Positions 3,001 to 61,133 of a DNA stretch of 64,000 nt are shown in pieces. The stretch is from positions 1 through 64,000 of the forward strand of contig MCFH01000011.1 in the NCBI GenBank assembly GCA_002104945.1, in the 5' to 3' direction. The translations under genes and the position numbers were made by a program. A model generated the notes under the pieces. That model had not been told where the DNA came from, searched no databases, and saw only the letters and a list, made by a program, of their open reading frames with translations. Origin of the DNA: Piromyces finnis finn (lineage: Eukaryota; Fungi; Neocallimastigomycota). Position 1 is the stretch's first letter; each line of letters opens with the position of its first letter.

Positions 3001-6000
3001 TATCTATTTCAATATCCAATAAATCTTGGGAATCCTTTAATTGTTGCTCCATAATTTCATTTTCAAAACTTATTGATTCATATTTCTTATTTTCTTGTTC
3101 CATATGCTCTTGAACTTCCTTTAATTGTTGCTCCATAATCTTATTTTCAAAAATTAAAGATTCATATTTCTTATTTTCTTTCTCCATGTATTCCTGAGTT
3201 TCTTTTAATTGTTGTTCCATGATCTCTTTTTCGAATACTAATGATTCATATTTCTTATTTTCATTTTCTGTGTATTCTTGTGATTCCTTAATTTGTTTCT
3301 CCATAATTTCATTTTCGGTAACTATGGATTCATATTTCTTATTTTCTTGTTCCATATGCTCTTGAACTTCCTTTAATTGTTGTTCCATAATCTTGTTTTC
3401 ACAAACTAAAGATTCATATTTTTCATTTTCTTGCTCTATCATTTCTTGAGTTTCTCTTAATTGATATTCCATAATTTCATTTTCAATAAGTAATGTTTTA
3501 CTTTCATATATTTTTTGCTCCAAATGTTTTTGGGACTCTTCTAATTGATTCTCTAGGTTTATCTTTTCAGATACCAAACTTTTTGTTTTATCAGTTTCTT
3601 GTTCTAATACTTCTTGAATATTAATGTACTCATTTTGAAGTTCAATATATTCTTTTTTAGATTCTTCTAATTCATTAACAATAATATTGTATTTAAATTC
3701 ATATTCGTTTGATGTTTCTTCTAATTCATCAATACGTTCTTTTAATTCATTAATTGTTTCTGTAGTATTAGAATCAATGTTTTTACTGGATTTCTTAAGA
3801 CTTTCGATTAATTTCTTAGATATTTCAACCTTTTTCTTTGAATTTTCTAATTCATTAACGATCTTTGTGTTTTTACTTGTTAATGAAGCAATTTCAGTTT
3901 CAAGTTTTTGAATCTTTTCATTGGAATTTTTAACCTTTTCTTTGCTATTGAAAAGTTTTCTATATATTTCCTTATTTACCTTCATAATATCATCTTGTTT
4001 TTCTTTTAGTTGATTAAATTTAATTTTTTGTTTTTCAATTATATCATTACTTTCTAATAATTGTTTATTCATTTCTTCAAATTCCTTTTCAGCATTATTC
4101 ATTTGGTCCTTTTTTTCTTTAATTATTTCTTGTTTTTCTTGAAGTTCACATTTTAGACTATTAACCATTTCAGATAATGTGGAAATTTCTTTTGATTTTT
4201 CATTATTTTCTTTTGTGATGCTTTCCTTTTCTTTTTCAATAGTTTTATAATAGTCCTTATTTTTATTAATCTCCTCTTCATTCTTCATAATCTTTCCCTT
4301 TAAAATTTCAATTTCTTCTGAACTTTTCTTTTCTTTCATTAAATGCTTTTCAATAAGACTTTCAATTTCTTTATTATACTTATTTTCTTCTTGTGTTTGT
4401 CTTTCTTTTATATTTTTAATCTCATTTTGAAGTTCTTTATCTTTTTGAGCGTGTTGTAACTTTATGCTATCTAAAATATCTTTGTATTCTTTTTCTTTTT
4501 GGTTGTACTTTTCCTTTTCTTCATCCATCATTTTCTTACTATCCTTTAATTGTTCTTTCAATGCTACAATTAAATTGTTATTCTTGTGTTTCATTTCATC
4601 AATATTTAATTTTTCATTTGAAATCATTTCATCTTTTTCTTTAAGTTGCATTTTTAAGGATTTAATCAATTTCGTTAATTCTACTTCCATAATTAAAGTA
4701 GAAGTAACTTTATGATTAAGCTTATTCTCTAAAGATGTAACTAATTTTTTATTATTATTTTCAATAATAGATATATTCTCTTTTTCTTTTTCTAATGCAC
4801 TTTCTTTCTCCTTTATAAGATGTTCTAACTTGTCAATCTTTTCTTTTTCCTTATCCTCTAATTTAATAAGTTTTTCACGAAGCATTTCATTTTCACTTTT
4901 TATAAAGTTATTCATTTTTTCACTACTGTCAATTTGATATCTTAAATCGTTATCAATTGTGGAGTACATTTCTAAAATTTCTTCACTATTCATTAATTGG
5001 CCGGCTAATGATTTATTATTTTTTTTTAATTCAACATTTTCAATAATCAATTTTTGAATTTGTTCTTGTTGAGTAACCTTTCCATTAGCCAAACTCTTTT
5101 CTTTTTTCATTTCATTAATTAAATCTTCTTTTTCCTTTTCTACTTTATTAATTTTATTATTATATTCCTTTAATTGTTGATTTAATGTAGCATTGATCTT
5201 TTCTTTTTCAGACATGTTTTTGTTAATATGATCTATTTTTTCTTTTAATTCTTGTATCTCGGTGTTTTTCATTGTTTCCATTTCTTTGATTTCTTCCTTT
5301 AATGTTTCAATTTCTTGTTTCTTAGATTCATCAACTTCTTTAATATGCATATTCATTTCTTTGATTTTTTCTATTTTATTTTTAATATCATTCTCTAAGC
5401 CATTCATTTGACTATTCATTTTTTTAATTTGTTCTTCTTTTTGTGCAACATTCGTTAATGTAGAATTATGGTCTTCGCTTATTGTCTTTATTTCCTTCTT
5501 TAAAGTTTCAATATCATCTTTATTTATATCAATGGTACTTTTTAATTCATTTATTTCTTTACTCTTATTTTCAATATTCTCAGCATAGTCATTAATTAAT
5601 TTATCATTTTCCTTCATTTGTTCATTTAATGTTTCAAAAAGATTATCTTTTTCATTAATTGACTGTAATAAAGTATCTATTGAATCTTCCTTTTCCTTAA
5701 TACTAGTCATTAAGATATTAACATTAGTTTGTAAGTTATTAATCATTTTTTCCTTATCATTTAATTCATTCTTTAAGGAATTAACTGTTTCATCTTTCTT
5801 TTGCAATTCTTCTGTAAGTGTCTGTTTTTCTTGTTCTAATTCCTCAGTCATTTCTTCAATATACTTATCTTTCTCGTAAAGAGTTTCATTAGATTCATCA
5901 ATTAATTTATTATTAATTTGAGCATCAATTTGAAGTTTTTCATTTAATTCATCCTTTTCTTTAATTGTTTTATTAAGACGTTTTATAGATTTTTCTTTAT

Positions 6001-9000
6001 TTGAAATATTAGTTCTTAATTTATTAATATCATTTTGATTTATTTCTGCTTGATTAGCTAGTTCTTCAATAATATCTTCTTTTTCAGAAATTACCTTTTT
6101 AAGTTCATCAATAATCTTATCTTTTTGAGAAATTGTTTGAGTTGTAAGAGTTTTTGATTTTTCCATTTCTAATTTTTTATTTTCTATGTCAATTACTAAT
6201 TGATTTATTTGTGATTCTTTTTCTTTTAAATCTTTATTAATGTTATCAAGAATTAATTGCTTATCTTGAACTAATAATGTAAGTTTTTCAATTACCTTGA
6301 ATTTTTCATTTACTTCCTTATTAAGGTTTTCCATTTTATCGTCTTTTTCTGCTAATGAATTATTTTTAAGTTCAATAGATTCATTCAAACATTTAACCTT
6401 TTCTTGGAGATCATCAATTAATTTATTCTTATTATTTATTATTTCATTATTACTTTGAATAAATTCTTCCTTTTCCAAAATGTTTCCATTTAATGATTTT
6501 ATTGAAACATCTTTTTCCTTAATAATATTTTCTAAATTTTTAATAATCTCCTTTTTCTTTTGAATTTCTTCATTATATTCATTAACAAGATTATTCTTTT
6601 CTTTAATGATTTCATTTAATGAATCTATGATTTTTTCCTTTTCTTTCATAGTATCATCTTTTTTATCATTCCATTTATTACTTTCTTTCAAATTACTTGT
6701 TAATGATTCAATTGAAGATTCCTTTTCATTAATATTATTAGTTAAATTATTAATACTACTATTTAATTCATCAATGGTAGTTTCATGACTTTTAATTTTG
6801 TTATTTAAACTTTCGATTAATTCATCTTTACCATTCATATGATCATTAATATTATAAAGTGAGTCATCTTTTTCTTTAATAATATTTTCTAATTCATTAA
6901 TTCTTTCTTCTGATTTAACCAAATTTGTCTTGTATGTTAAAAGGTTCTTATCCTTTTCATAAACAGAATTAGATAATTGATCAATAGAATTGTTCTTTTC
7001 TTTTAAACTTTTTCTTAAATCTTTAATCAATATATCCTTTTCTTTTATGGTAGCATCACGTTCTTCAACAGTTTCCTTGACATTGTGAATATCAATAAGT
7101 AATTGATTAATAGCGGTATCTTTTTCATTCAAATTATCATCATATTTCTTTTTCAAGTTTTTAATTTCGATAGTATTACATTCATTAATTTTCTTAATGC
7201 TATTTTCACGGTCATGGATAGCTTTTACTAACTTTTCAATTGTTTTTTCTTTTTCAACACATTCTTTATGCATATCATTAAGAGCAATTTTGTTCTCCAT
7301 TTTATCATTTTCCAATTTTTTAATAATATTTTCTTTTTCCTTTAATTTCTTAGAAGTATTATCATTTTGTTTTGCATTATCAGCAATAGTTTTTTGTAAA
7401 TCACTAGCAGCCTTTTCCATAATTTTCTTTTCGTTAATTATATTTGATATTTCGATCTTCATAGCTTTCATTTCATTATCCTTCTTTTCTAATTTTTCTT
7501 TTCCTTCTCTAATTTCAACTTCCTTGGATTTTAATTTTTTATCTAATTCTGTAATAGTACTTAAAAATTTTTTATTATCCTTTTCATATTTTTTATAATC
7601 TTGATTGTTTAATTTTTTTTCTAACTCTTCAATTTTTCTGTTCTTTTGATCTAATTCTCCACTAAGATTATCCATGCTACTTTTTGTAAATTTCAAATCT
7701 TGTTTAACTCTTTTAATAATATCTTGACTAATTTTAAGTTCAGCATTTTTAGCATTAATTTGTTGTTTATAATTATTTAATTGGGCTTCCATAGATTTAA
7801 TATCTTCACCTTTATTCACTTCACATTCATTATTATCATCATTATTAACTTCCATATGATTAAGTATATCATCTTTTTGTCTTTCTAATTCTTTAACCAT
7901 CTCTTCTTGTTCCTTTAATTCTTCCTTACATGCAGATAGTTCATTTTTTAAATCACAATTTAAAGCATGTTCTTTACGTTGTTCACTTTCTAATTTTTCA
8001 ATAGCACTTTCGAGAATATCATATTGAGTTTGCTTTTCATTTAATTGATGTTGAAGATTTTGACATTGATCTTTTAAATTTCTATTCACTTGCTCTAAAC
8101 TATCAATTACATTGTTTAATTGTTTATTACTTTCCATTATCTCTTCGTATTTGATGTTAAGTTCTTGAGTTTCATTTTTAGAAGTTTCCATGGTTTTATT
8201 TAATAATTCATTATACTTTGTATTTAGAATTTCCAATTCTTTTTCTTTTTCTTCTAATTGACCATTTTTTTGTTCTATCATATCGTTTAACGAATTTTCT
8301 TTTATACTAATTGAATCTACAATTAAATTAATTTCATTCATTAAATCATTAATTTTGTCATTCTTTTTATCACTTTGATTTACTTCATTTGTAATTTTAT
8401 CAATTTTGCATGCAATTATTTCTTTTTCCAAAATATAAGATTCTAATGATTGTGTAGTTGGTAAAGTTTCAGTAGTGGTATTGTTATTAACAGTCTTCTT
8501 TATTTGTTTATTTTGATAATCCTTTTTATTAGATATTGGTTCTGGAGTAATTGTGTCATTTCCATCTTTACTTTCAAAGAACTCTAAATCTTGTAAACTT
8601 GAATTTCTACTAAATACCTTTTTATCTAATATTTTATTATTTCTGTTTTCATTATCATTATTACATTCACTAGTATCTTTAACTTCGCTATCTAATTTTT
8701 CTTTGGAATCATAATATTCTAAGGATGAATTGTTACTTTTATTAAATGAGCTTAAACTTTCATTACTACTACTTTCAATTACATCTTTAATATTGTTATT
8801 AAAATTCTTTTTTGATTTTTTGGTAAAAGTATTGTTCTTTTTTGACATCTTTTTTTTACGATTATTTTTTTTGGATGTTGATTTATTTTTTTCCAAATTA
8901 GTATCATTATTAGCTAAACTTTTGTATCTATATTTGTTTAAATAATTTTTTATCTTTGGAGTATTTAGTTTTACTAAATATCCCAGTATTGATAATGCTA

Positions 9001-9016
9001 TAACTATTAAAAACAT
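1..9016 (-). CDS. Giant intronless coiled-coil protein (>3005 aa, 3' end outside window) with N-terminal hydrophobic anchor and Lys-rich segment
   Basis: ATG at 9016 reads MFLIVIALSILGYLVKLNTPKIKNYLNKYRY...KKNNRKKKMSKK, followed by E/K/N/L-rich heptad sequence. The frame was open at every point spot-checked (9016-7550, ~4700, 3500-2950, 50-2), but not every codon was read. It is missing from the ORF track, consistent with having no stop inside the window. Confidence 0.85.
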   Translation of the reverse strand, partial: MFLIVIALSILGYLVKLNTPKIKNYLNKYRYKSLANNDTNLEKNKSTSKKNNRKKKMSKKNNTFTKKSKKNFNNNIKDVIESSSNESLSSFNKSNNSSLEYYDSKEKLDSEVKDTSECNNDNENRNNKILDKKVFSRNSSLQDLEFFESKDGNDTITPEPISNKKDYQNKQIKKTVNNNTTTETLPTTQSLESYILEKEIIACKIDKITNEVNQSDKKNDKINDLMNEINLIVDSISIKENSLNDMIEQKNGQLEEKEKELEILNTKYNELLNKTMETSKNETQELNIKYEEIMESNKQLNNVIDSLEQVNRNLKDQCQNLQHQLNEKQTQYDILESAIEKLESEQRKEHALNCDLKNELSACKEELKEQEEMVKELERQKDDILNHMEVNNDDNNECEVNKGEDIKSMEAQLNNYKQQINAKNAELKISQDIIKRVKQDLKFTKSSMDNLSGELDQKNRKIEELEKKLNNQDYKKYEKDNKKFLSTITELDKKLKSKEVEIREGKEKLEKKDNEMKAMKIEISNIINEKKIMEKAASDLQKTIADNAKQNDNTSKKLKEKENIIKKLENDKMENKIALNDMHKECVEKEKTIEKLVKAIHDRENSIKKINECNTIEIKNLKKKYDDNLNEKDTAINQLLIDIHNVKETVEERDATIKEKDILIKDLRKSLKEKNNSIDQLSNSVYEKDKNLLTYKTNLVKSEERINELENIIKEKDDSLYNINDHMNGKDELIESLNNKIKSHETTIDELNSSINNLTNNINEKESSIESLTSNLKESNKWNDKKDDTMKEKEKIIDSLNEIIKEKNNLVNEYNEEIQKKKEIIKNLENIIKEKDVSIKSLNGNILEKEEFIQSNNEIINNKNKLIDDLQEKVKCLNESIELKNNSLAEKDDKMENLNKEVNEKFKVIEKLTLLVQDKQLILDNINKDLKEKESQINQLVIDIENKKLEMEKSKTLTTQTISQKDKIIDELKKVISEKEDIIEELANQAEINQNDINKLRTNISNKEKSIKRLNKTIKEKDELNEKLQIDAQINNKLIDESNETLYEKDKYIEEMTEELEQEKQTLTEELQKKDETVNSLKNELNDKEKMINNLQTNVNILMTSIKEKEDSIDTLLQSINEKDNLFETLNEQMKENDKLINDYAENIENKSKEINELKSTIDINKDDIETLKKEIKTISEDHNSTLTNVAQKEEQIKKMNSQMNGLENDIKNKIEKIKEMNMHIKEVDESKKQEIETLKEEIKEMETMKNTEIQELKEKIDHINKNMSEKEKINATLNQQLKEYNNKINKVEKEKEDLINEMKKEKSLANGKVTQQEQIQKLIIENVELKKNNKSLAGQLMNSEEILEMYSTIDNDLRYQIDSSEKMNNFIKSENEMLREKLIKLEDKEKEKIDKLEHLIKEKESALEKEKENISIIENNNKKLVTSLENKLNHKVTSTLIMEVELTKLIKSLKMQLKEKDEMISNEKLNIDEMKHKNNNLIVALKEQLKDSKKMMDEEKEKYNQKEKEYKDILDSIKLQHAQKDKELQNEIKNIKERQTQEENKYNKEIESLIEKHLMKEKKSSEEIEILKGKIMKNEEEINKNKDYYKTIEKEKESITKENNEKSKEISTLSEMVNSLKCELQEKQEIIKEKKDQMNNAEKEFEEMNKQLLESNDIIEKQKIKFNQLKEKQDDIMKVNKEIYRKLFNSKEKVKNSNEKIQKLETEIASLTSKNTKIVNELENSKKKVEISKKLIESLKKSSKNIDSNTTETINELKERIDELEETSNEYEFKYNIIVNELEESKKEYIELQNEYINIQEVLEQETDKTKSLVSEKINLENQLEESQKHLEQKIYESKTLLIENEIMEYQLRETQEMIEQENEKYESLVCENKIMEQQLKEVQEHMEQENKKYESIVTENEIMEKQIKESQEYTENENKKYESLVFEKEIMEQQLKETQEYMEKENKKYESLIFENKIMEQQLKEVQEHMEQENKKYESISFENEIMEQQLKDSQDLLDIEIDRYDNLVSSNRSMEDQLSFIENKIQNNDEISSLQGEISQHKETTLETEKDNSKSIKKELIEVKQQFEEEKEKDKQEIKSLQMEIMNLNNNYEEIKNEMLLNNQRMKRISRSNDTLKVLIEEKDKEIMNISEKNSDILNLNRTFIEKLKNEQQTNASLQEEISLLSDDVNRKDEIIEMCKEEIEKLNKDINKKYQKDKKYYNELRETRSTVNSYKMEIKEKEEMIFKLEQEIEELNKIHSEACTEFEKINDGLKNELDYLNKQSGRKIRNGTLQLQEKKEQIQMLLSEKDILKDQLKSMEDKYLDKEKEFDNQMKEATTLAQKSTEELKKSKKANEILKGVISALKKSRDDFSDKYEKEVDQNKVHKKEIERLTHLSETLESKRDELEFMYNQVINNLDYYKHEVDKASTDKQHYINELKENKEESQNKDKMIEELNRAVQNLNEQKQILDGLSKEREVEMDRSKRTIDNLKTEIGMIQKENVHLKKRIIDEENKSKDYESRISYFEETLWQRDDLIECQLIEINNLKNEIDDVYQINRDLEFDLSKAERHLDSYENDLNEVKQELYDMNENKKALEIENMSKEGIINDLEVDNLMKDEKLKGLRLEGLSIKEKLRALEIEMNTKDKIILGINERNLIKEERIKVLNEQLTSSEHSKNDFKKLNDQLIEQLKSEKAKVTELSMKLCSIDDNIKEKEEVIEENRLILKTLSERNKEFIETVNTLKGKLQKEIDINKSHQSEIIELQKSLDETSEALETTKTDLKKKETEVEISKKIIEHLKEDFQETQKELEIQQETIKVKEDTSEKMTTEMENLKQIVNEREQQNEQLNNKIQSLEEKVTTLYDTIQEKEQNYVKVTENYNNLLDQFNEEKLRLESTKRGHDQLEQTIQKLHSEMMNQEIKLKSTSTDNDTLRKEQEEYKEKEKMFMEQLIKERAQIEEKNQQLKELQVNMTEELQKKELENEKFKENIRSLSKIIEVTRTSILNNLKDKEELNKKNKTLEE
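2981..3484 (-). repeat. Six in-frame 84-bp (28-aa) tandem repeats inside the giant coiled-coil ORF
   Basis: Units such as ENKIMEQQLKEVQEHMEQENKKYESIVT and ENEIMEKQIKESQEYTENENKKYESLVF; the plus-strand word gattcatattt recurs every 84 nt. Confidence 0.9.
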
Positions 9017-11264
9017 TTTTATCACTGTAAAATATTATTAATTTATTTTTTAATTTGATATTTATAATTAATTATAAAGTAATTTTTGATAATATAAATG
9101 ATAATATACAATGTATATTGAATATATTTAATATTATAATATTATGGTTTCTTTTTTTTTTTACAAAATTAAAGAATATTAAAATTTATTTATGATTATG
9201 TTTAGTATATTTTTAAATTAATGAATATTAAAACATCTTATGTTTAGTTTTATTTATGTATTTTAATGTTTTGATTAGATAGTATACATTTAATTATTAT
9301 TAATTTGTTTAAAGTTCATTACCAATTTTTAATTTAAAATATACAAATTATACAATTTAATACAAAAAGGAAATATTCTTTCTTTATAGCAACAATTTAG
9401 TAAAACATCATTACTTATTTTCTCTTTATTATATTATTTTATTTTATTTTTTTAAAGACAAAGAGATTAAAAGAAAAAAAAAATTCACATAAAACATTTA
9501 TTTTTATTTTTTTACTTTTAATTCTATATATAGTTTAAAATTTTAAAAAACTTTTTACATAAATAATAAATTAAATATGTTATTTTTAAAATTTCATATT
9601 CGATACATTGCTATTATAAATACAAAACAATAAAAAAAAAATATATCCTTTTTTCTTATTAATTTTTATTATTACAATGAAACAAATTTATTACTATAAA
9701 TATTATTTATAAAATACTTATTTTATTAATATAGTCTTTTTTTTTTTTATTTCTTTTTTCATAATATATTTATAAACATTTATATATATATATATATTTT
9801 ATTATTATAATTATTATTAGTAAGTTAAGTAAGAAAGTTTTTTTTTTAAAAATAGAAATATTAAAATTTTAATATATTTTAAAATTTCAATGTATCATCT
9901 TCAACTACATACATTAAAAATAACAATAATAAAAAACAAAAAAAAACCTGAATAATAAATTTTAAGTTTAGTATCTTTGGATCTGTAGTTCATACATGAC
10001 ATATCACAATGCATATTAAATAAAATCAAAAATCATAATAATATCAAGTATTTTATAATATTGTGTTATGTATTATACATGTGAGCATGGAAGTGACAAA
10101 AAGTAGTATTTAACTTTTAAATTTTGTCTTATATAATAAATTTTATTTTAAAATTAATTCCTATATTATTATTTTATAAAAATTATGATAGCTATAGCTA
10201 TATTTAAAATAAGTTTTAAACAATATGTATAGAAATTATAAATTAAACTTTTATTAATAATTATTATTTTACTTTATACCTATTGACATTACTAAATATT
10301 ATTTTAATGACAATATTATTTAAAGGTTAAGATTTATACAAATATTAAGCAATAAAAAAATAAAAATTATATAAAGCTATTTCAAAAAATTATATAAAGA
10401 AGTAATAATGTAATGATATAGTTTTGTATTTTACTAAATTAAAGTTTAACCTTTTCCATTTTAAAAACTGATACTGTGTAAATAAAAAATAAAATTCTTT
10501 TTTTTTAAATTTGTTATTCTATTTTCTAAAAAATATGAATAACAGTTTTGGTATTTCATTTATTTGAGTTAAAATATAAAAACATCAATTATGTTTTATT
10601 ATAATTTATTTATATTTATTCATTTAATTCAATATTTATGTTTATATTGTAAATAATATTATTTTTCATTTGTTAAATTAAGTATAAATAAACTTTTGTA
10701 AAATTTTCTTTGAATATTATACTGCCATTAATAACATCATATTCTTATTAATTCTTTATCAGAAATAATATTTTATGAAATAATATTTAATTTTTCTATT
10801 ATGAATTTTTTAAATATGAAAATGAAGCCTTTTACTAGTTCTAATCATAAACAAATTTTAATTTTTAGTTTAATATTTTTCATTTTTAATCATACGCAAA
10901 GATATATAAAATATGAATAACATGCATTTAATATTATTGTATTTATAATTTTATTATATAACATAATTTATAAAAAATTCAGCTATGAACTCTAATAATT
11001 TATAATAAACATATGTTTGTATAGATTAGATTAAAATAAAGTTAAAAATTAAATATCCTTAACCCTTCAAAAAATCTATAACAAAAGATAGGTTTTAATA
11101 TCTTTTTAAATTATCTATTTGAAGTTGTTATAGGTGTGTTTTTATATTAAAATTTATGTAAATTATAAAGAAAAAGTTTGAATTATCAATGTCTTTAGAT
11201 TTCAAAATAGTATTTCAATTCAACAATATATTTATATATATACTTTTACCATCAAGATTACCAA

Positions 11265-34864: not shown

Positions 34865-37204
34865 TTATAAATTCAATTTCTCTATAACATCTGGAGGTAA
34901 ACGATACTTATTTTCATTTAAAATTTCTTTTGTTTTTTCCATTTTCTTTTGTAATAAATAATAATTATTTAAAATATTACTATAGTTTTGTTGGAATATT
35001 TCTTTTTCTTGTTGTTGTTTAGCTACAAATAAACTTAACTGGGAATTTTTTTCTTCTAATGCTTTTACTTTCTTTTCTAGATTCATAATTTTTAATACTT
35101 TTCTCATTCTTGAACGACGAGCAGCTTCAGTATTCTTTCTACGTTTTTCTAGTACAACAATGTCTTCATCTAATTCACTTGATTTTTTCATTTTCTTAGA
35201 ACTTGTTTCATCTTTCACCTCTACCTTAATACTTTCTTCTATTTTCTTTATTGCTTCTTCAATATCATCTTCATCTTTAATCGCGTTTAAATCAATTTGA
35301 TAACCATTTTTAGCTAATAATTCATCAACTTTCATCATATGCTTTCCTTTTCTATTAAGTTTTAACGAACTTGGCAATTCATTTGTATTATTTGAACTAT
35401 TGCTATTGCTATTATAAAGACTGGAGAATGACATAGAATTACAGCTTTTATTTAAATCATTTAGGAATGGTGGGTTTGTATTAATAGGTGATAATTTCAA
35501 TAAATCATTCGTTTCTAATTTAAATGGAGGGAGTTGTAAAAATGGTAAATTATTTTTTAACAATTGTTTATCATCAAAGTCACATTCCTTTTTAATATTC
35601 ACATTAAAATCTGGTATACTGTTAAAATCATTATATAATGATTCCTTTAAAAGGTTTTCCTCTTTTTTTATGAATAGCTTTAATTTTTCTTTATTTTCTT
35701 CTTCTTTTACTATATTTATATATAAGAAATTTATAATTTAATTAATATTATATATAAAATATTGTTTAATATCATCATTTTTAACGAATAAATTATTAAA
35801 ATTGATAGGGCCTCCCTTTCAATGAATCAAGTTATTAAATAATTAATAAAAATTTACCTTTTGCTATTTTTTCAAAGGAGCTATTCAAGGCTTTCATATT
35901 AAATTTGTTTAATCCATTCATTAGTTGAGAGTTTTGTTTTATATTTTTATTATATAGTATTTCTATATCATTATCTTTCTTTTCCAAAGGTTCGGATTTA
36001 ATTTTATTTTTATTTCCAAATGTTGATTCACAAATATCTAAACATTTGTCTATATCTTCTATCATATAATTATTCATAAATTTTGACGTTGAGTCTAATG
36101 CTTTCAATGAACTACTTTCACTATTTTTAATGGGTTTTTTGATGGTTTCTTTTGGTTCCTGTTTTACAGTATTTTTATTATAATTGAAATTAAGAGTTGA
36201 CAGCCACCCACTTTTAGGTTTTTCATCATTTTTTTCATTATTATTGCTATTGTTATTTTGATTAATTGAAGTATTATTGTTATTGCTGTTTTGATATGTC
36301 ATTTTATAATTATTAGCATTGTTATTATTATTATTAATATTGTTATTTATATTATTATTATTATTATTGACACTGTTGATATTGTTGTTATTATTGTTGT
36401 TGGTATTCATGGTATTATTGTTTGGGTTGTTTGGGTTATTATTATTGCTATTATTATAAGATGTCTCATTTGATTTTGATTGATAACAACAACTATATAC
36501 ATCGTTAACATTCTAGTAATGTGTGAAAGAACAGGAAAAAAAAAAAAGTATTACTAATATGTTTATATATTATATCAATATAATATATAATAAAAAAAAA
36601 AAAAAACTTACCACTATTGAATTATTATTATTTTGACAACTAGCATTACAATAATTGTTATTATAATGACAATTATTATTATTGTTGTCATTATTATTTT
36701 GATAATGACATTCATTATTATAGCAATTTTGATAAACTACATTATCGCATTTATTATTACTATTACTATTATTATTATTATTAAATTGGGATAGTGTATT
36801 GTAATTCATATTGCTTGTTGCATTATAACAATTATTTCCATTGACTGACAGAGAATGGTTTATTTTAGAATTGTATTCATTTCGATTATTCATAGAATTT
36901 ATATTATTGCTACAACATTCATTACAATTATTATTATTGTTGTTATTGTTGTTATTATTATTATTATTACCACTACAATTATGGTTCTTTTCCTCTGAAT
37001 GACTACAAAAACAATTTCCTGCAAGACAACCTAAACAAGGATTTTCTGAAGATGATATACAATATTTGTTAAGATCACACGAATTTCCTTTATATTTACT
37101 ATTATTATCATTATCAATTCTGATTCCATCACATTCAAGAGTATTTAAATTTCCTGCTATTGTATAAAAGTATTAAAAATTATTTTTAAAAATTTATTAA
37201 AAAA

Positions 37205-37264
<60 letters not shown>

Positions 37265-38336
37265 GTTTATTATTATGTTTATTATGTTTATTATTATTAT
37301 TATGTTTATTATTATGTTTATTATGTTTATTATTATTATTATGTTTATTATTATTATGTTTATTATTATTATTATTATGTTTATTATTATGTTTATTATA
37401 TTTATTATTAAATGATTATTTAATAGTATTGAATAGTATAGAGTAATCAACTATACCTTCTTCATTACAACAGCAACTACCAGAACATTTACAATTGTTA
37501 TCATCACAGTAAAATGTAAAAGTATTATCATAATTTAATATACTGTATACATCCTTAACGGTATTATTATTATTATTATTACTTTTATTATTAGTAGTAT
37601 TATTAGAAAAATTGTTTACATCACTGGTGTTATTAGTGTTCATGGAACAGTCATCATTATCAACAAAGTTACTATTAAATGTATTGTTAGAACAACAATT
37701 ATCAGTACAATGGCTATTATTGGTATTGATAGAACAACAATCATTACAATTTTTGCTATTATTATCATAACTATTACAGTTGTTACAATTAATATTTTCT
37801 GAACAATTATTATTGACACTATTATTATTCTTATTCGTATTGCTGTTATTACTGACGGTTATCGCATAATTTCTATCATTAGAATTATTAATATTTTTAT
37901 TATTATTTTTAACGTCATATTCACAATCACATTCACTATTAGAATAACAATTTGAAACCTTTTTTTTCCTTTTTGATTGATTTTTAGGTTTATCAGATGA
38001 TTTTGATTCCTGTGATTTATCTTTTCTAGTGTAGCTTCTAGTTTTTTTTTTCTGTTTTGCAGCCATATTTTTATAGTATGAAATACAGGTACGAGGTGAA
38101 CATCCACAGGCAGCACATTCCTCTTCTGTAAAAGAATGACCTTCTACGGTATATTCTTTTCCTCTTTTAGTTATTCTTATTGTGACACCTTCAAATAAAT
38201 CATTATTTTCTTGTTGGTATTTTGAACTGTTCTCATTATTACAATTTGGTGATGAAGAAGAACAAGATGTTGAATCATCTTTTGAGATATTACATGATGT
38301 ATTATTGCAATTGTCCATATTACATGAATAATTCAT
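34865..38336 (-). CDS. 974-aa Asn/Cys-rich protein with C-terminal Gcn4/Cpc1-type bZIP; 4 exons (38336-37457, 37156-36612, 36512-35858, 35709-34865)
   Basis: The four track ORFs join in phase through GT-AG introns (total 2925 nt). Basic region EKRRKNTEAARRSRMRK followed by a leucine zipper resembles Gcn4 (KRARNTEAARRSRARK). Confidence 0.85.
37205..37400 (+). repeat. Compound (TAT)n / (TTATTATGT)-type low-complexity repeat in bZIP intron 1
   Basis: A tattat run is followed by repeated attatgttt units and lies wholly within the predicted intron 37456-37157. Confidence 0.85.
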
Positions 38337-38734
38337 ACTACGTTATAAAAAAAATCCTAATAAATCTATAAAGTAGTATTTTTCAAAGAAATAAAAATAT
38401 TGTTCATTTAAAATAATTATTACTAAAAAATATATGAAGAGGAAAAAAAAAAAAACATAAATCCAATAATTTGATTTAAAATGAAAAACTTACATGTTTA
38501 AAGAATAATATTCGTTTGATATATAATTTCAAATATTATAAAATTGTATTATTATTATTTTTATTATTATTAAATAATGTTTTATATATATATATAAATT
38601 TTATATTGAATTTTAGATTTATTATTTTTCAAAAAAAAAAAAAAAATAGTTAATTTGATATCTAATTTATGTAATAAACTATTTATCTTTTTATTTGAAT
38701 AATTAATTTCGAAATTAATACTGATTTTTCCTTT

Positions 38735-49244: not shown

Positions 49245-52200
49245 TTATTTAAAGTTTTGGGCAAGAGCGGCCATCTTTTGACAAAGTTGTTCATTGGTTT
49301 CTTGTAAATCAAATATCTTGTCTTCTAAATCACGTTTTTGATCTTCTAATTTAGTATAGTCGGTCTTTAAATCTTTAAGTTCAGCTTGTAATTCAGCTAT
49401 AAGTTGATAACTTAATTCTTTTTCTTGCTTATATCCATCGACTTGATCATCCATGGCATCTAATTGTTCTTCCATAAGGTTGTACGCTTCTCTAACCTTG
49501 CTTAATTCTTCTGAAATTTCATTGATCTCTTGATCACGTTCTTTTAATACTTCACATAATTCTTGATAATCATCTTCGGTTTGACGAAGAAGATCTTCTA
49601 ATTCAATGTTCTTTTGTGTTAATTCTTCAACAAGCTTAGCTTGATCCTTCTTTTCACCTTCAGCTTCTTCCTTCTTTTCTTCGGTATTACCATTGGTATT
49701 ACCATCTTCACCTTCCTTCTTTTCTTTATCACCTTCAACTGGAGTATTGGCCTTTTCTTCGGTTTCCTTAGTTGGTGATGATGAGGCTTCTTTATCCTTG
49801 CTGTCGGTATCGTTCTTCTTTTGATTTGCTTCTAAATCTGTAATTTGACGGTTAAGATCTTCGTTTATCAAGGTAAGTTCATCTAATTGTTTAACTAAAT
49901 CTTCATTATTAAATTGAAGATCATCAATGTACTTATTCAATTCATCATTGTTAATCTCTACTTCCTCAATATGTTTGTTCATGTCATCGGCGGCAAATTC
50001 TAAATCTTCAATTTGCTTGTTTAACTCTTCATTGGCTGTTTGCAATTTGGTCACTTGATCTTCAAGATTCTTGTTCTTTCCTTCTAATTCTTCTATATGG
50101 TCCTTGCATTGAGTAATTTGTTCATTAAGTTGTCCTAATTGTTCATTTAATGCTGATGGAGTTTCAACATCAGCAGCAACAGTAGCTGGAACATCATCTG
50201 ATTCCTTGGCTTCCTTTCCTTGGAGAGATTTTAATTGTTCTTCCAAGAAAGCGGTGTCCTTCTTAAGATCAACTAATTCTTTTAATAGGTCGGAGTTTTC
50301 TTGAACTAATGATTCAAGTATATCCTTACCCTTTAATAAACTATCTTCAATGTCTGGGTTGGAAGTTTCGGCAATTTCATTCCATGAAATAAGTTCAAGA
50401 ACATCACTGACATTGGTAGTGTTACTTTGTAACATGGCTTGGCATTTTTGAAGAGAAACTTCTAATACCTTGATCTTTTGATCTAATTCACTTAAATCGT
50501 TATTGGATTGATGAATAGCTTCACCTACATTTTCTAAATCCTTTAATTTTCCTTCTAATTCTTGAATGGTTTGTTGAGCCTTGGCAAGATCTTCATTCAA
50601 GTTTTTAATCATTTCTTCAGTTTCTGGTGAAGACTGAGTAGCAGGAGATGAAATGTCACCATTCATACTCTTAGTGGCGTTTGGATTTTGGATGGATGAT
50701 TCTTCAGCTGGTTTAGCCTCTAATTCGGCTTGAAGACGAGCAATTTCTTGATGGGCTTGGTTTAATTCAGTAGTTAAACCATCAATTTGTTCTCTGAGAA
50801 GTGCCATATCTTCTTCCATTCCTTTAATGACATCTTCCATTTCGGTTTGATGGTTAACCTTGAGATCTTCCATTTGTTGTTGCGTATTTTCTAATTCTTG
50901 TTGAAGTTTATCAATGGTTGATTTTAATTCTTCAACATCACCCAAAGTACTGGTTGTTGGGCTTGGAACTATTCCTTGTCCATTGGCTGCAGCATTCTTA
51001 ACTTCTTCTAATTCTTTTTCAAGATCAGATTTTTCTTGAGTTAATCTATCAATAGTTTGCTTTAACTGTTCAACAGATTCAATACCGGAAGCTTCAGACA
51101 CTTCACCATTACTAACTTCTGGTGGAACTACAACAGAAGCATTGGAATCTTCTATAGTAGCACTTTGTGGTGAAGAAGAACCGTTCTTAGCTGATGGAGA
51201 TCCATTTGGAGATTGGCTTGGTGAATTGTTTCCGGAGGATTTTTGAGACAAACGACTTAACTTGTGGTTGAGACGATCACGTTCATGAAGAACTTGTTGA
51301 ATCTTACCCTTAATAATATCGTAGTCGGTATTGATCTTTTTCCAGCGGTATTTCATATCTTCATGATCATCAATCATTTGATGAATTTGTTTATTCAATT
51401 GACTATGATCCTTGTAACGGAGATCTAATTCATAATCTAACGCTTGTAATTGTTCAACAACGTTAGATCGTTCATAATCTAATTTACGGTTTTGATCTTG
51501 GAAGTAGTAGAATTCTTCACTTTCTTGTCCTTGAAGGGCTTCCAATCTATCAATAACTTCATGTCGTTGATTGTCAATAATACCTAAATCATCTTCAAGT
51601 TGTTGATGTCTGGCTCTCTTATCATCAATTTCTTGTTCTATGACATACTTCTCGTTTTGAGCTTGTTCAATGTTTTGATCAAGGTGAACTAAATCACCGT
51701 GAATAAGATCCATGTTATTTTTAATAAGTTGTCTATTCTCTTGATATTCTTGTAATTTGTTTTCCACAGCATTAATTCTACCTTTAAGCTCTTCCATTTC
51801 TACAGGAGATGGAGAACGTGCATTTTGTAATTGTTGAGTTAAATCATTAATAGTATTTTGAAGATTTTCAATTCTTTGTTCGTAATCTTCAATTAATTGA
51901 TTATCAACGTTTTTATTTTCGACACCATCATTTGTGGTGTTTTCATTATTCATGGTAGATAGTTGTTTTTGCTTATCTTGAATTTCTTGTTCTAATTGAG
52001 CAAGGGTAGCCTTTAATTCTTCAATTTGTCCTTGATAACCAGCTTCAGTGGCATCGATTTCACGAGAAACTGGTGATGTATTTTGTAAGTTTTGAATTTG
52101 TTCCTCCTTTTCATTAAGAAGATGTTGAATTTGTTCTAATTGTTGATTAAGATTTTCATTTTCCATTTTATATTGATCAACTTGTTGTTGAAGTTCAGAA

Positions 52201-55200
52201 TTATTATTGTTCTCATTAATAATAACTGGGGCGGCATCTCTTGTCATTGAAAGCTCACTAATGGATATATTCTTCTTTTCAATTTCTTCTAAAGAATCTT
52301 CTAATCTCTTCTTGATAGCTTCAGATTCATCACGAGTACGTTCTAATTCACCTCTTAACTCTTCCTCATGAGCAATGTGATCTTGAATAGATGTTTCCAA
52401 GTTTTGCTTTTCTTCCTTTAATTGTTCAAGGTTTTCTCTCATTTCATTGTATTCCTTAGTCATATTATTAATATCACCTTGTAAATTTTCATATTGAACT
52501 TCCATGGATTGAAGTTCATTCTTGGTTTGTTCATAATTTTCTAAATCATTTGTTTTTTCTTTAAGAGCATTGTAGGAAATTATCATTTCGTCACGTTCAT
52601 TTCTTAATTCGCTGTATTGGCGCGTTAAATCATTATAGATGTCTTGTTGTTCTTGTCTTTCTTGATTAATGATTTCAATATCACTAAGTTTCATTTGATA
52701 TTGTTCTTCCAAGTCCTTCTTCTCTTCAACAAGTTTTTCAATATTTTGCTCTAATTCGCCTTGTTTAGAATTGTATTCTTCAACCTTTCCCTTATACTCT
52801 TCAACTTCTTCCTTAAGTTGCTTGATTTCAATTTGGGCTTCTTCTAACAACTTTTCAGCAGCTTCAGAACCAGATAAATTACCAACTATGACTTCCATTT
52901 CAGTAATTTTTTTGTTTTTAGCCTCAATGTCCTTTGTACATTTATCATTTTCTTCACGAACAGAATCTAATTCTTGTTGCATACGACTAACTTCATTATC
53001 GAATTGTTCCATGGCGATTTGAAGTTGCTCTCTTAAATTCTCACGTTCTTCTTCAATAGATTCCTTTAATTCAGCATTGTTATCTTCAGCAGCTCTCAAT
53101 TTTTCATTTAAAAGATCTTTTTCTCTGGACATTTGTTCCAATTTATCGATGGATTGAGCAATTTGGACTTGTAATGTTTGAACCATTTTTCTTGATTCAT
53201 TTAATTGAATTTCAATTTCTTCGGAATCTTGTTCATCTTCTAAAACTAAAATCTTATCCTTTAACTCATTAATTTCCATGTTTGCTTTTTCTAATTGATC
53301 TTCTAAATCATTTTTACGACCTGAAACTTCAGATATTTTTCTTTCCATCATGACTTGAGATTGAGTGAATTCCATTTCACGTTGTTCTTTTTCTTCTTGT
53401 AAGGTTACGATTTGAGCATCATTTTGTTTAACTCTTTCTTCTAATTCCGAAATAGTTTTATCTTTTTGTTCTACATTATCTTGAAGAGAAAGAATATGTT
53501 CTTCCATTTTATTTAACTTTGATGTCAACTCTTCTTCAGTTTGATTTTTCATTTGTTCAACGTCAGAAAGTTGACGTTGTAAATTAGTCATAGATTCCTG
53601 GGAACGACCTAATTCGGTACGCAAATTATCAATTTGTTCAATATTTTTTACTCTATTTTCAATTTGAAGATTTTGTACCTTGAGAGATTCGTCTAATCGT
53701 TGACTCAAGTCTTCCACTTCAGATGTTTTCTTTTGTAATTGATCACGGAAAACTTGATTAGTAAGTTTTGTTTCTTCTAATTCTTTTTGACATTTCATTA
53801 AAACATCAGATTGATTTTTCATTTCTTCTGATTGCTTAAATAATTCATGTTCTAAATCTTCTTTAGCTTTTATCATTTTATCACGAGCATTATCAGCAGC
53901 TCTAATTCTTTCCTCATTTTCTTTCATATCATTTTCGTATTTTGAAATGGTATTTCTACATTCATTTAAACTTGCATCCAATCTTTCGTTTTCCATACGA
54001 TTAGTAGAAAGTTCCTTTTGAATATTTGAATTTATCATTTTCCATTCTAAAAGTTCTTCCTGTGCTTCGCGACATTTCTTTTCCAATTCTTTAATTTGTA
54101 ATATTTGATTTTTTCTTTCTTCATTACCTTTTGGTAATTGATTAGTATCTGGAGGTATGGCTAAACCTGAAGTTAAAATAGTAGCTTCAAGTTCTTGAAC
54201 ACGACTTTCATAGGCATCTTCTCTTGCCTTAACTTCTTCAAAAGCCTTTTTATAGGTTTCTAATTCACCTTCCATAGTTTTTGTACAAGTTTCAGCAATA
54301 TGTCTTGCTTCTAAATTACGTTTTGATGCCTTTGTCCAACTATTTAATTTTGTTCTTAAATTATTAATTATATCTTCTGATTCATCTAACCTTTTTTTTA
54401 ATTGTTGGCGATCCGATATTTCCCGATATAATGATGGATCTTTTGATGAAAGCTGTGAAACCACTGAATTAAGATAGAAAACTTCTTCTTGAGCAGCTTT
54501 ACGTTTACGTTCAGCTTCTTTTACCAATTCGTTATTTCTATGAGTAATTTGTTCTGCCTGCGCTAATTGTCTTTTAAATGAAAGTAAACTTTTAAATAAT
54601 TGGGAACGAGCTTCCATAGCTTCTTCTCTACTTAATTTATCATTATTCTTTAAAAAATCAAAAGCTAAAGTGGTATTTTCACCTTCTTCATCATTTGGTT
54701 TCCCTAGTTGTTTATATACAACTAATTCTGATTGAAGCCTTTAAAATAATAATATTATTTATAAATAATTTATATTATATTTAGATATAAATCAAATTAT
54801 ATTATACATTATAAAAATGGTATTTAACAACATTAATAATAACAGGAAAAATAAAGTATTTAAAAAATTATTTAATATTGATAATATTTTCATTTATACA
54901 ATAAAGCATCATTAATATCATAAATATAAAATAATTATCATTCAGTAATAAATATTTAAAATGAAATTTTTTTATTATTTTTAAAAAAATTATATATATA
55001 TATATTAAATTATTTAAATATTTAAAATATTTGTGTAAATAATATTTAATTTTTCTATTATAATCTATAAATTTTAAAAATACAATCAACTTTACTTACC
55101 AAGCTTCTTTTGTTTTTAAATCGAGTAATATCTTATTTTTTGTTTGAAGTTCATCTTGTAAATTTTCTTTATTAGATTAATTTTCATGAAAAGATTATAA

Positions 55201-59339: not shown

Positions 59340-61133
59340 TCAGTACTTTGTGTTTGGCGGAAATGTTGGATCTTGGAAATAACGGAAATTAATATACTCG
59401 ACATCCTTTGTTTTATTGATAATTCCAGTATACATCCAATTTTGATTATAAGTTACATTGTAGTTTGCAATTGGAGAAGTTGTATCAATATTCTTTATGT
59501 AATTTGAAATTAAATACTCTTTTGTAATAATCCAAACGAGGACTAGCATTATTGAAATAGCTAATTGTTGTTCAGAACCAGTATTACTACTCATGATAAC
59601 AATTCAAAGTTTCTTATATTTTTACTTATAATGTTCTAATTAAATTATTAATTGATAAGATATAGTTTACATTTTATATTTTATTAAACTTTTTTTTTAA
59701 AAAAAAAAAATAAATTATAATTAATTTAAAATATGTACAGTAATATATCATATATTACATAATTAGTTTACTGTACTTTTAAGATTAACCTTAATTAAAA
59801 ATATAAATAATGAATACATATAGATAACTATAATTAATTTATATCCACATATAGATATATATAAATTAAATATTAATCCAATATGTTTATAATAAATTAA
59901 GTATAAATAATAAACATAATAAATAATATATTTAAATAATTTTATTGCAATTTAAACAATAATATACTAATGTAGCTTAAATATTTAGCATCATATGAAG
60001 AATTAGTTAATTCATTATTTGCAGCGTATTCAATATAATTGGAACTTTATGATCCAAGAGATCTTGAACAAGTTTTGGTTTTCCTGTTTGTAAATTATAA
60101 TTATCTTGAACAAGTATATTCTGGTTAGTGTTATGAATATGTGAATAACATTTTTTCATATCTTCTTTATCAGAATCTGGATATTCCTTACAACTACCCA
60201 TATCTGATATATTAATTTCACTTCCTAAATATTCATCTTTCTTATTACCATACATCCATTGTCCACGAGTTAATAAAACTATTTTGCCACTTACATCGCC
60301 AAGTTTTGGAAAACTTTCCTTTCCACTATAGAAAAAATCTTTATATGATTTGGAGAAAGAAGTAGAATCGGTTTTTAATATACTGAGATTAGCAATTGCT
60401 TTATATACTTCTTCCTTTGATTCAAAACCGTCTATTTTAACCGTATGTACTTCACCATGCATATAATCATGATATTCACTAGTACTACCTAATTGAATAT
60501 CATCATCTTTTAAATGCATAATAATGGCTTCTCCTGAATTATTACCTAGAAATTCAATAGCTTCATCAAATACATCTTCTAAATAATATTTCTTTCCTGT
60601 ATCTCTATTCATACAATCAAATACATCGTGCGAAAGATATATTTCTTTATTTTTGTTTGTTTTAATTCGTATATCAAAATATCTAATTCCATTCATCATT
60701 TGTTCAAAAATATTTAATTCTTGAGTTCTACCAAACATTACTCTAGCATCCAAAAAATTAACACCAGTATCTCCTATAGCATATGTTCCACTATCATGTG
60801 TCCCAGGAATGTTAAGTTGATTAATTCGTACATAATCATCAGTAATTTTTGTTATCCAGTGAATATCATCATCATTGATTTTAAGTGTACACCATCTATA
60901 TTCAGTTAATGCACGCTTAGTTGTTAAATCAATGTCATAATAAGGAACTTTATTCATGGTAAGCATCCTATTGTAAGTTTCTCCGCCAGTTTCAGTATTT
61001 GTAAAATAACACTTGTTACTATCAATATCAATATAACCTTTGATTGTTATACCATCTAATATTGACCTTGATCTTTTACATCCAACACATTTCTAACTAG
61101 TGCAATTGCAATAATAGCTGAAAAAAATAGCAT
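59340..61133 (-). pseudogene. Bacterial-type PI-specific phospholipase C X-domain gene; 319-codon intronless core (60007-60966) with disrupted flanks
   Basis: Core motifs LNIPGTHDSGT, RTQELNIFEQMMNGIRYFDIR and YLSH. In-frame TAG (61093-61095) and TAA (61135-61137) lie upstream, a signal-like MLFFSAIIAIALV is out of frame, and a coding-like remnant lies at 59340-59594. The domain call is strong; pseudogene status is moderate. Confidence 0.6.

Follow-up and report, generated by a model that had tools for sequence, protein, structure and literature searches.

The Yap1 family includes cysteine-rich basic leucine zipper (bZIP) proteins that sense redox state and have been discussed alongside HapX, and the cysteine-rich region B (CRR-B) of HapX and Yap5 carries the motif CGFCX5CXC (PMC4232046). 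The copper-sensing REP motif of Mac1 is CXCX4CXCX2CX2H (PMC4992176). Here we describe a gene of Piromyces finnis that codes for a Gcn4-type bZIP domain preceded by a cysteine-rich half with three conserved modules, called A, B and C. The gene occupies positions 34865 to 38336, minus strand, of a 64,000-nucleotide stretch of contig MCFH01000011.1 (GenBank assembly GCA_002104945.1), hereafter called the window. Its features are as follows.

37457..38336, minus strand: exon 1, with the ATG at 38336 and 293 codons plus 1 base; N-terminal cysteine motif, module A, basic stretch, cysteine/asparagine low complexity and module B (spliced contigs, orthologue alignment)
38232..38336, minus strand: N-terminal motif MNYSCNMDNCNNTSC..., with 5 cysteines
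38061..38198, minus strand: module A (residues 47-92), LFEGVTI..T..G..YTVEG..FTEEEC-x2-C-G-[C/H]-S-x3-C-I-x-YYKN, with the core CxxCx[C/H]x4C
37956..38057, minus strand: Lys/Arg-rich stretch after module A, with a KRKKK core in three of the five orthologues and KKKK or KRKK runs in the other two
37551..37955, minus strand: Asn-rich low complexity of exon 1, non-conserved, 13 cysteines; a 42-nucleotide unit is tandemly duplicated (x2) at 37656-37763
37467..37550, minus strand: module B (residues 263-290), VYSILNYD....FYC-x4-C-x-C-x3-C(CC)
37157..37456, minus strand: intron 1, 300 nucleotides, GT..AG
36612..37156, minus strand: exon 2, 545 nucleotides; module C, then Asn-rich low complexity
36978..37151, minus strand: module C, NTLEC-DGIRID...YKGNSC-DL.KYC-ISS....C-[LF]G-C-x4-C-x-C, then a His/acidic tail; begins right after the exon 1/2 junction
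36612..36977, minus strand: Asn-rich low complexity of exon 2, non-conserved, 11 cysteines, CNECCS included
36513..36611, minus strand: intron 2, 99 nucleotides, GT..AG
35858..36512, minus strand: exon 3; Asn-rich tract, then the conserved blocks EKPKSGWLSTLNFNYNK, SKFMNNYMIEDIDKCLDICESTFGN and FNMKALNSS
35710..35857, minus strand: intron 3, 148 nucleotides, GT..AG (contig record offsets)
34865..35709, minus strand: exon 4, with the stop at 34865-34867; conserved acidic/Leu-Pro motifs, bZIP and conserved C-terminal coiled-coil extension
35018..35149, minus strand: bZIP basic region and first zipper heptads, EKRRKNTEAARRSRMRKVLKIMNLEKKVKALEEKNSQLSLFVAK (Pfam bZIP_2; GCN4 chains are the best PDB matches)

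The protein shares with Gcn4, CpcA and Cpc1 a C-terminal bZIP domain, the identical DNA-contact basic region NTEAARRSR and an acidic region upstream of the bZIP. However, it is 974 amino acids long, has a cysteine- and histidine-rich N-terminal half and a conserved extension of about 50 residues past the zipper, and is one of four paralogues in the genome that carry this basic region.

The preliminary description of this locus drew an analogy with HapX and Yap5, and some likeness exists in the combination of a bZIP with clusters of four cysteines. In addition, module C ends in C[LF]GCx4CxC, which is near the spacing of CGFCX5CXC. However, the GF is missing and the spacer has one residue fewer (x4 in place of x5), so that the protein lacks the CRR-B motif as defined. 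The cysteine modules lie N-terminal to the bZIP, whereas those of HapX and Yap5 are C-terminal, the basic region is of the Gcn4 type rather than the Yap type, and sequence homology does not extend beyond the bZIP. A CBC-binding (CCAAT-binding complex) domain is not found in the protein by Pfam; a six-frame search of the genome for Hap4_Hap_bind (PF10297), run without a positive control, was likewise blank. The analogy therefore fails at the CRR-B motif, at the domain for CBC binding and at the basic region.

Modules B and C also include a C-x4-C-x-C core with histidine that recalls Mac1, although this is a resemblance only, as the full REP pattern is not present. More generally, the dense CxC, CC and CxxC spacing is like that of Mac1, Ace1, Cuf1 and fungal metallothioneins, and the number of cysteine repeats varies between lineages. 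Unlike Mac1, Ace1 and Cuf1, the protein would bind DNA through its bZIP and has no copper-fist domain (no Pfam match to PF00649); a six-frame genome search for PF00649 without a positive control was blank. These likenesses to HapX/Yap5 and Mac1 indicate a possible mode of action, not family membership. Yap1 and Pap1 also combine a bZIP with cysteine-rich regulatory domains, but they have another type of basic region, and the present protein has far more cysteines along with runs of histidine. No homology to the N- and C-terminal cysteine-rich domains of Yap1 (n-CRD/c-CRD) and no nuclear export signal were identified in it.

A transcribed four-exon gene with a Gcn4-type bZIP

The preliminary description had joined four open reading frames into one protein of 974 amino acids. 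We rebuilt this model from the sequence: four minus-strand exons, joined across GT..AG introns, give a coding sequence of 2925 nucleotides with a single terminal stop. The GC content of the window is 17-20%, and only coding parts are higher, at 22-31%. Most of intron 1 is a 206-nucleotide microsatellite, (TAT)n / ATAATAAAC, at 37205-37410 (GC about 9%). The protein has 52 cysteines and is 25% asparagine. Forty-eight of the cysteines fall within residues 1-484, which makes the earlier manual count of about 48 in the first ~490 residues exact. Every cluster quoted with that count is also present, namely CKCSGSCCC (residues 282-290), CNDCCS (197-202), CTDNCCS (210-216), CNECCS (371-376) and PCLGCLAGNCFC (333-344).

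Transcription was assessed by aligning to the window the contigs of four public runs from three studies (X1-X4), which were only guessed to be RNA. These runs contain 71-79% of the sampled words, a share close to that expected with the introns missing. Contigs in X1-X4 omit exactly 37157-37456, corresponding to intron 1, and contigs in X1-X3 omit exactly 36513-36611, corresponding to intron 2. For intron 3, positions 751 and 778 of the contig record correspond to window positions 35683 and 35858, and the 26 letters between them match 35684-35709, which is repeat-masked. Because these offsets leave only 26 nucleotides, matching 35684-35709, the segment 35710-35857 must have been removed from the transcript. 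Moreover, since the genome carries introns that the contigs omit, the contigs derive from RNA. The locus is a real, transcribed four-exon gene, and contigs of public runs support all three of the junctions by which one spliced transcript was proposed to join the cysteine-rich half to the bZIP. A low-complexity segment within exon 2 (36658-36792) is bridged by no listed contig piece; it is free of stops, has some depth and lies inside a public gene model (P0003, below).

At the A10 run of exon 1 (38041), one X4 contig with a depth of 13 shows an additional base, which would shift the frame after about residue 98. The same run differs from the genome at three single-nucleotide positions (36018, 37736 and 38055), and the other three runs match the genome. 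These differences are probably due to strain variation, slippage or assembly error. Odd joints found in single contigs, such as 35253 to 36537 in X4 (side 20), were taken as assembly chimeras at low-complexity sequence.

Placed contig sequence stops at 38358, and about 106 letters further 5′ are unplaced. Within 38359-38500 (minus strand), upstream ATGs occur at 38495 (ATG-TAA, 1 codon), 38458 (17 codons) and 38407 (13 codons), and a GTAAGT lies at 38493-38488, upstream of the start codon. The leader may thus carry upstream open reading frames, through which translation of Gcn4 and Cpc1 is controlled, or an intron in the 5′ untranslated region.

The full architecture is absent from public annotation, in which every model of the locus is fragmentary, and it was overlooked for this reason. 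The public match to this locus is P. finnis BCR36DRAFT_15052. The P. finnis model P0003 (593 amino acids) begins inside exon 2 and is without the cysteine-rich half, and the Piromyces sp. E2 model P0001 (494 amino acids) joins exon 1 to exon 4, omitting modules B and C. The annotation of Neocallimastix sp. 'constans' is split into a 308-amino acid partial model and a 564-amino acid model, and that of N. californiae/lanati (P0015, 554 amino acids) covers exons 3-4 only. A literature search found no paper naming the locus tags or a cysteine-rich bZIP in anaerobic fungi.

Exon 4, which includes EKRRKNTEAARRSRMRK, matches Pfam bZIP_2 with an E value of 3.8e-9 and a score of 36.9 bits, above the gathering threshold of 22.3. 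The Gcn4/Cpc1 basic-region signature N-x2-A-A-x2-S-R is present near the C-terminus, the zipper heptads can be read as L-L-L-Q-F-I-L, and the zipper runs on into the conserved extension NYSNILNNYY..QKKMEKTKEIL.ENKYRLPPDV. A sequence search of the PDB gave yeast GCN4 chains (2dgc, 1dgc and 1ysa) as the best matches, with NTEAARRSR identical, in agreement with the bZIP type first assigned to the protein.

Searches of the P. finnis genome (56.46 Mb in 232 contigs) revealed three further genes that carry this basic region, of which two are arranged in tandem at a distance of about 3.7 kb.

G000:C68:857235-857441 and 860927-861136, plus strand: tandem pair of paralogues on contig 68, NTEAARRSRMRK basic region
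G000:C101:831013-831273, minus strand: third paralogue, on contig 101, NTEAARRSRMRK basic region

Each of the three has 0-1 cysteines in a single open frame of about 500 amino acids. By these comparisons, the gene is the cysteine-rich member of a small Gcn4-like family. A Gcn4 orthologue is expected to be the single general-control activator of its genome, and with three more NTEAARRSRMRK genes present orthology cannot be assigned to this copy. Because the three cysteine-poor paralogues share NTEAARRSRMRK, the gene need not control the general-control regulon, and one of the three may be the true general-control factor. Counts of general control response element (GCRE) sites (TGASTCA) are uninformative, with 6 in the window against 4.1 expected and none in the 2.2 kb upstream of the gene. 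A close relative of the bZIP and C-terminal extension occurs in a Logan contig from a genome that is not AT-rich (P0006, 278 amino acids). Its N-terminus is rich in serine and threonine and has only one cysteine, and it may represent an ancestral cysteine-poor state or merely a last exon.

Conserved modules and lineage-specific repeats

Four other sequences, read as DNA, contain the same gene of four exons, and its introns agree in position and phase. These are Piromyces sp. E2 (L007), where an assembly gap has removed exon 3, Neocallimastix sp. 'constans' (L006), a complete, Piromyces-like orthologue on a metagenome contig (L012, JGI 3300019375) and exons 1-2 of an orthologue on another JGI metagenome contig (L009). 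With the P. finnis gene they make up the five orthologues compared here; conservation in exon 3 is judged from three sequences.

Cysteine accounts for 9.6% of exon 1 and 9.9% of exon 2, and for about 10% of the first 484 residues against a background of about 1.2%. In other stop-free segments of the genome the value is 0.95-1.2%. Asn-rich 60-residue windows elsewhere in the genome, in a small sample, also have only 1.2% cysteine, so the high cysteine content does not follow from coding sequence rich in AT and Asn. At the background rate, the probability of at least 48 cysteines in 484 residues is about 8e-33, and enrichment by chance is excluded. All five orthologues have 5.5-9.9% cysteine in exons 1-2.

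The preliminary description would have been undermined by cysteine positions that vary among orthologues. Instead, five-way alignments reveal 14 cysteines of exons 1-2 that are invariant in all five: C5, C74, C77 and C84, then C277, C282, C284 and C288 of module B, and six in module C. In module A, where C74, C77 and C84 are the invariant positions, C79 is replaced by histidine in all three Neocallimastix copies. Replacement of cysteine by histidine is typical of metal ligands, and this swap thus counts in favor of a metal-ligand role. The conserved basic stretch that follows module A is possibly a nuclear localization signal. In the protein, modules B and C adjoin each other, with intron 1 between them in the gene. 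The His/acidic tail after module C is present in all five orthologues, in the forms HSEEKNH, HSHHH, (HN)5 [HNHNHNHNHN], EHHHKHH and HDH. In exon 3, both cysteines of KCLDICESTF (KCLDIC at 36030-36047) are invariant among the three sequences available for this exon.

Over the module blocks, the ratio of nonsynonymous to synonymous differences per site (pN/pS) is 0.13-0.30 at a pS of 0.39-0.57, and the codons of the conserved cysteines are mixed, some being TGC and others TGT. Because pN/pS is low at this level of divergence and the codons vary, the conservation of the cysteines reflects selection on the protein rather than a lack of divergence. The alignments thus indicate that the module blocks are under purifying selection.

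Known families do not account for the modules. A Pfam scan run exon by exon at E<=1 gave no match in exons 1-2 and, in exon 3, nothing but an Ssr4 row below threshold. A PDB sequence search with residues 1-105 returned chance rows only (prion, E 0.58; NiFe-hydrogenase, E 1.3), and an ESM Atlas feature search with the Neocallimastix N-terminus gave no usable match. AlphaFold2 (AF2) predicts module A with a confidence score (predicted local distance difference test, pLDDT) of 81-86 for about residues 51-90; the model has three strands (51-56, 59-64 and 67-70) and two helices (71-76 and 81-97). Fold searches with this model found nothing above noise (Foldseek against the PDB, E>1; Atlas template-modeling score <=0.40). 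In a VIA-align comparison the best Z was 4.3 and numerous ribbon-helix-helix rows scored between 3 and 4, under the stated noise level of the tool.

When a profile of module A was compared with 1.84 billion representative proteins, the only true matches were from anaerobic fungi (P0005 and P0010). Three other matches were spurious, being a translated 57-amino acid satellite (P0009), a leucine-rich repeat protein (P0011) and a repeat protein (P0012). A word search with module C gave no candidates, and two metagenome scans with module C alignments gave pattern matches of which none was confirmed by tblastn, although such blanks mean little given that L009 and L012 are themselves JGI metagenome contigs. 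The P. finnis genome holds no paralogues of exon 1 or module C. In these searches, the cysteine modules were found only in anaerobic gut fungi (Neocallimastigomycota).

The clusters CNDCCS, CTDNCCS and CNECCS, which the preliminary description had stressed, are located in lineage-specific Asn-rich low complexity and are not conserved. The first two are simply the two copies of the 42-nucleotide tandem duplication in exon 1. The non-conserved tracts have 9-10% cysteine, and each lineage has independently amplified a different cysteine-bearing unit. In L012 (264-480) the N-terminal decapeptide, CN[IM]DACNS[AS]S, occurs in about seven copies, and the run behind module C in this sequence is (HN)5. 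In the Neocallimastix gene, a 210-nucleotide x3 repeat with 94% matches (L006 8099-8729) triplicates the whole of module A, and a minisatellite in exon 3 (L006 10867-11214; 15-nucleotide period x22, or 30-nucleotide x11.6) codes for a CNINDCNSNN tract of about 110 amino acids with 23 cysteines. The CNINDCNSNN minisatellite is also found in N. californiae/lanati. A 19-nucleotide x25 repeat is present in intron 3 of the same L006 gene (11558-12027).

Possible roles of the cysteine-rich half

To our knowledge, next to nothing is known about gene regulation or metal sensing in anaerobic gut fungi, which are of biotechnological interest and are not yet easy to manipulate genetically. The explanation that we favor, with a probability of about 0.4, is that the gene codes for a lineage-specific metalloregulatory bZIP factor with Zn- or Cu-type thiolate/imidazole centers. 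Judging from the identity of the basic region, the bZIP dimer would bind half-sites like those of AP-1/GCRE or of the cyclic AMP response element (CRE). Modules A-C would coordinate metal ions as thiolate/imidazole centers, for which Zn- or Cu-type sites seem likelier than Fe-S (iron-sulfur) clusters. Metal occupancy, or oxidation-driven loss of metal, would then change the activity, stability or localization of the factor, and transcription would thereby be tied to metal or thiol status. Repeats that bear thiol and imidazole groups were gained recurrently, which pure neutrality can hardly explain, and this provides the strongest indirect argument for a ligand function. If the modules do bind metal, the protein would be the first case of a cysteine-based sensor joined to a bZIP of the Gcn4 type instead of the Yap type, and its modules would be three small metal-binding units not described before, with natural variants that differ in repeat number.

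Several observations dampen our enthusiasm for this explanation. Conserved modules of four cysteines can be purely structural zinc sites. The N-terminal half matches no known metal-binding family in Pfam, PDB sequences or folds, and the AF2 model of module C alone is unusable (pLDDT 50). The seventh cysteine of module C (that of NSC) is phenylalanine in L012, and only C5 among the cysteines of the N-terminal motif is invariant. Furthermore, 26 of the 48 cysteines are in Asn-rich tracts that cannot be aligned between genera, and low complexity of this kind arises by replication slippage and may be neutral.

A bolder version of the metalloregulatory proposal, which we consider unlikely, is that modules A-C and the evolvable Cys-Asn and His-Asn repeats form an undescribed class of polynuclear metal-thiolate sensor grafted onto a Gcn4-like bZIP. 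Such a sensor, in fungi where the searches described above detected neither a copper-fist nor a HapX-type domain, would link a GCRE-type regulon to the supply of trace metals (Zn, Cu or Fe) in the sulfide-rich gut, and the number of repeats would tune metal capacity in each lineage.

Structural zinc is the rival that survives best, and we regard it as possible, if somewhat improbable. The modules would then be zinc sites that fold small domains for interaction with co-activators, partner bZIPs or additional DNA, with no role in sensing, and the factor would be regulated by other means. The compact strand-strand-strand-helix-helix fold predicted for module A, with its four ligands (C, C, C/H, C) and the conserved basic stretch behind it, suits this role. 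Interchange of cysteine and histidine is classic for structural zinc, and the lack of similarity to known sensor motifs would be no surprise. However, structural sites leave unexplained why cysteine repeats and histidine runs were amplified recurrently and independently across lineages, and why the non-conserved tracts are so rich in cysteine. Even in this case, the locus would provide a corrected gene model and a lineage-specific family of transcription factors.

It seems quite unlikely that the protein is a thiol-disulfide switch of the Yap1/Pap1 type, in which reduced cysteines oxidized by O2 or another oxidant would change its localization or activity. An obligate anaerobe with many conserved cysteines might well use such a switch, and the Yap1 family offers a precedent for cysteine-rich bZIP redox sensors (PMC4232046). 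However, the basic region is not of the Yap type, no cysteine-flanked nuclear export signal was identified, and the His-rich tails and metallothionein-like CxC/CC spacing favor metal ligands over a few redox pairs.

The variant preferred in the preliminary description was a HapX/Yap5-like Fe-S sensor, in which a [2Fe-2S] cluster held by one of the modules, perhaps together with glutathione or a glutaredoxin, would signal Fe-S status. Anaerobic fungi rely heavily on Fe-S enzymes, which lends this idea some appeal. The end of module C is also close in spacing to the CRR-B motif (PMC4232046). Nevertheless, we find it very doubtful in view of the differences in spacing and residues, the lack of a CBC-binding domain in the protein (the blank genome search had no positive control), the Gcn4-type basic region and the absence of HapX/Yap5 homology outside the bZIP. 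Thus, of the hybrid regulator first proposed, the Gcn4-type head and the conserved cysteine modules stand, whereas the specific Fe-S and hydrogenosome account does not. Sensing of metal, Fe-S or redox status, and any link to hydrogenosomal Fe-S enzymes, is purely inferred.

Finally, it is highly improbable, and already disfavored by the conservation data, that the cysteines accumulated neutrally through slippage of TGT/AAT-rich repeats in a genome of 17-20% GC, leaving a bZIP with a disordered N-terminus. Several cysteine tracts are tandem DNA repeats, and the 26 cysteines noted above are not conserved. However, the 14 invariant cysteines persist across three or more genera at a pS of 0.4-0.6, cysteine makes up about 0-1% of the three paralogues and of Asn-rich tracts elsewhere, and none of the five orthologues has lost its high cysteine content in exons 1-2.

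Other features of the window

Two giant stop-free frames are located on the minus strand of the window, at 2-9034 (3011 amino acids, running off the window start) and 49248-54740 (1831 amino acids). Both are cysteine-poor (0.5%) and have no Pfam domain at E<=1e-5. A 361-amino acid open frame at 60010-61092, also on the minus strand, carries a PI-PLC X domain (PF00388, E 6e-7).

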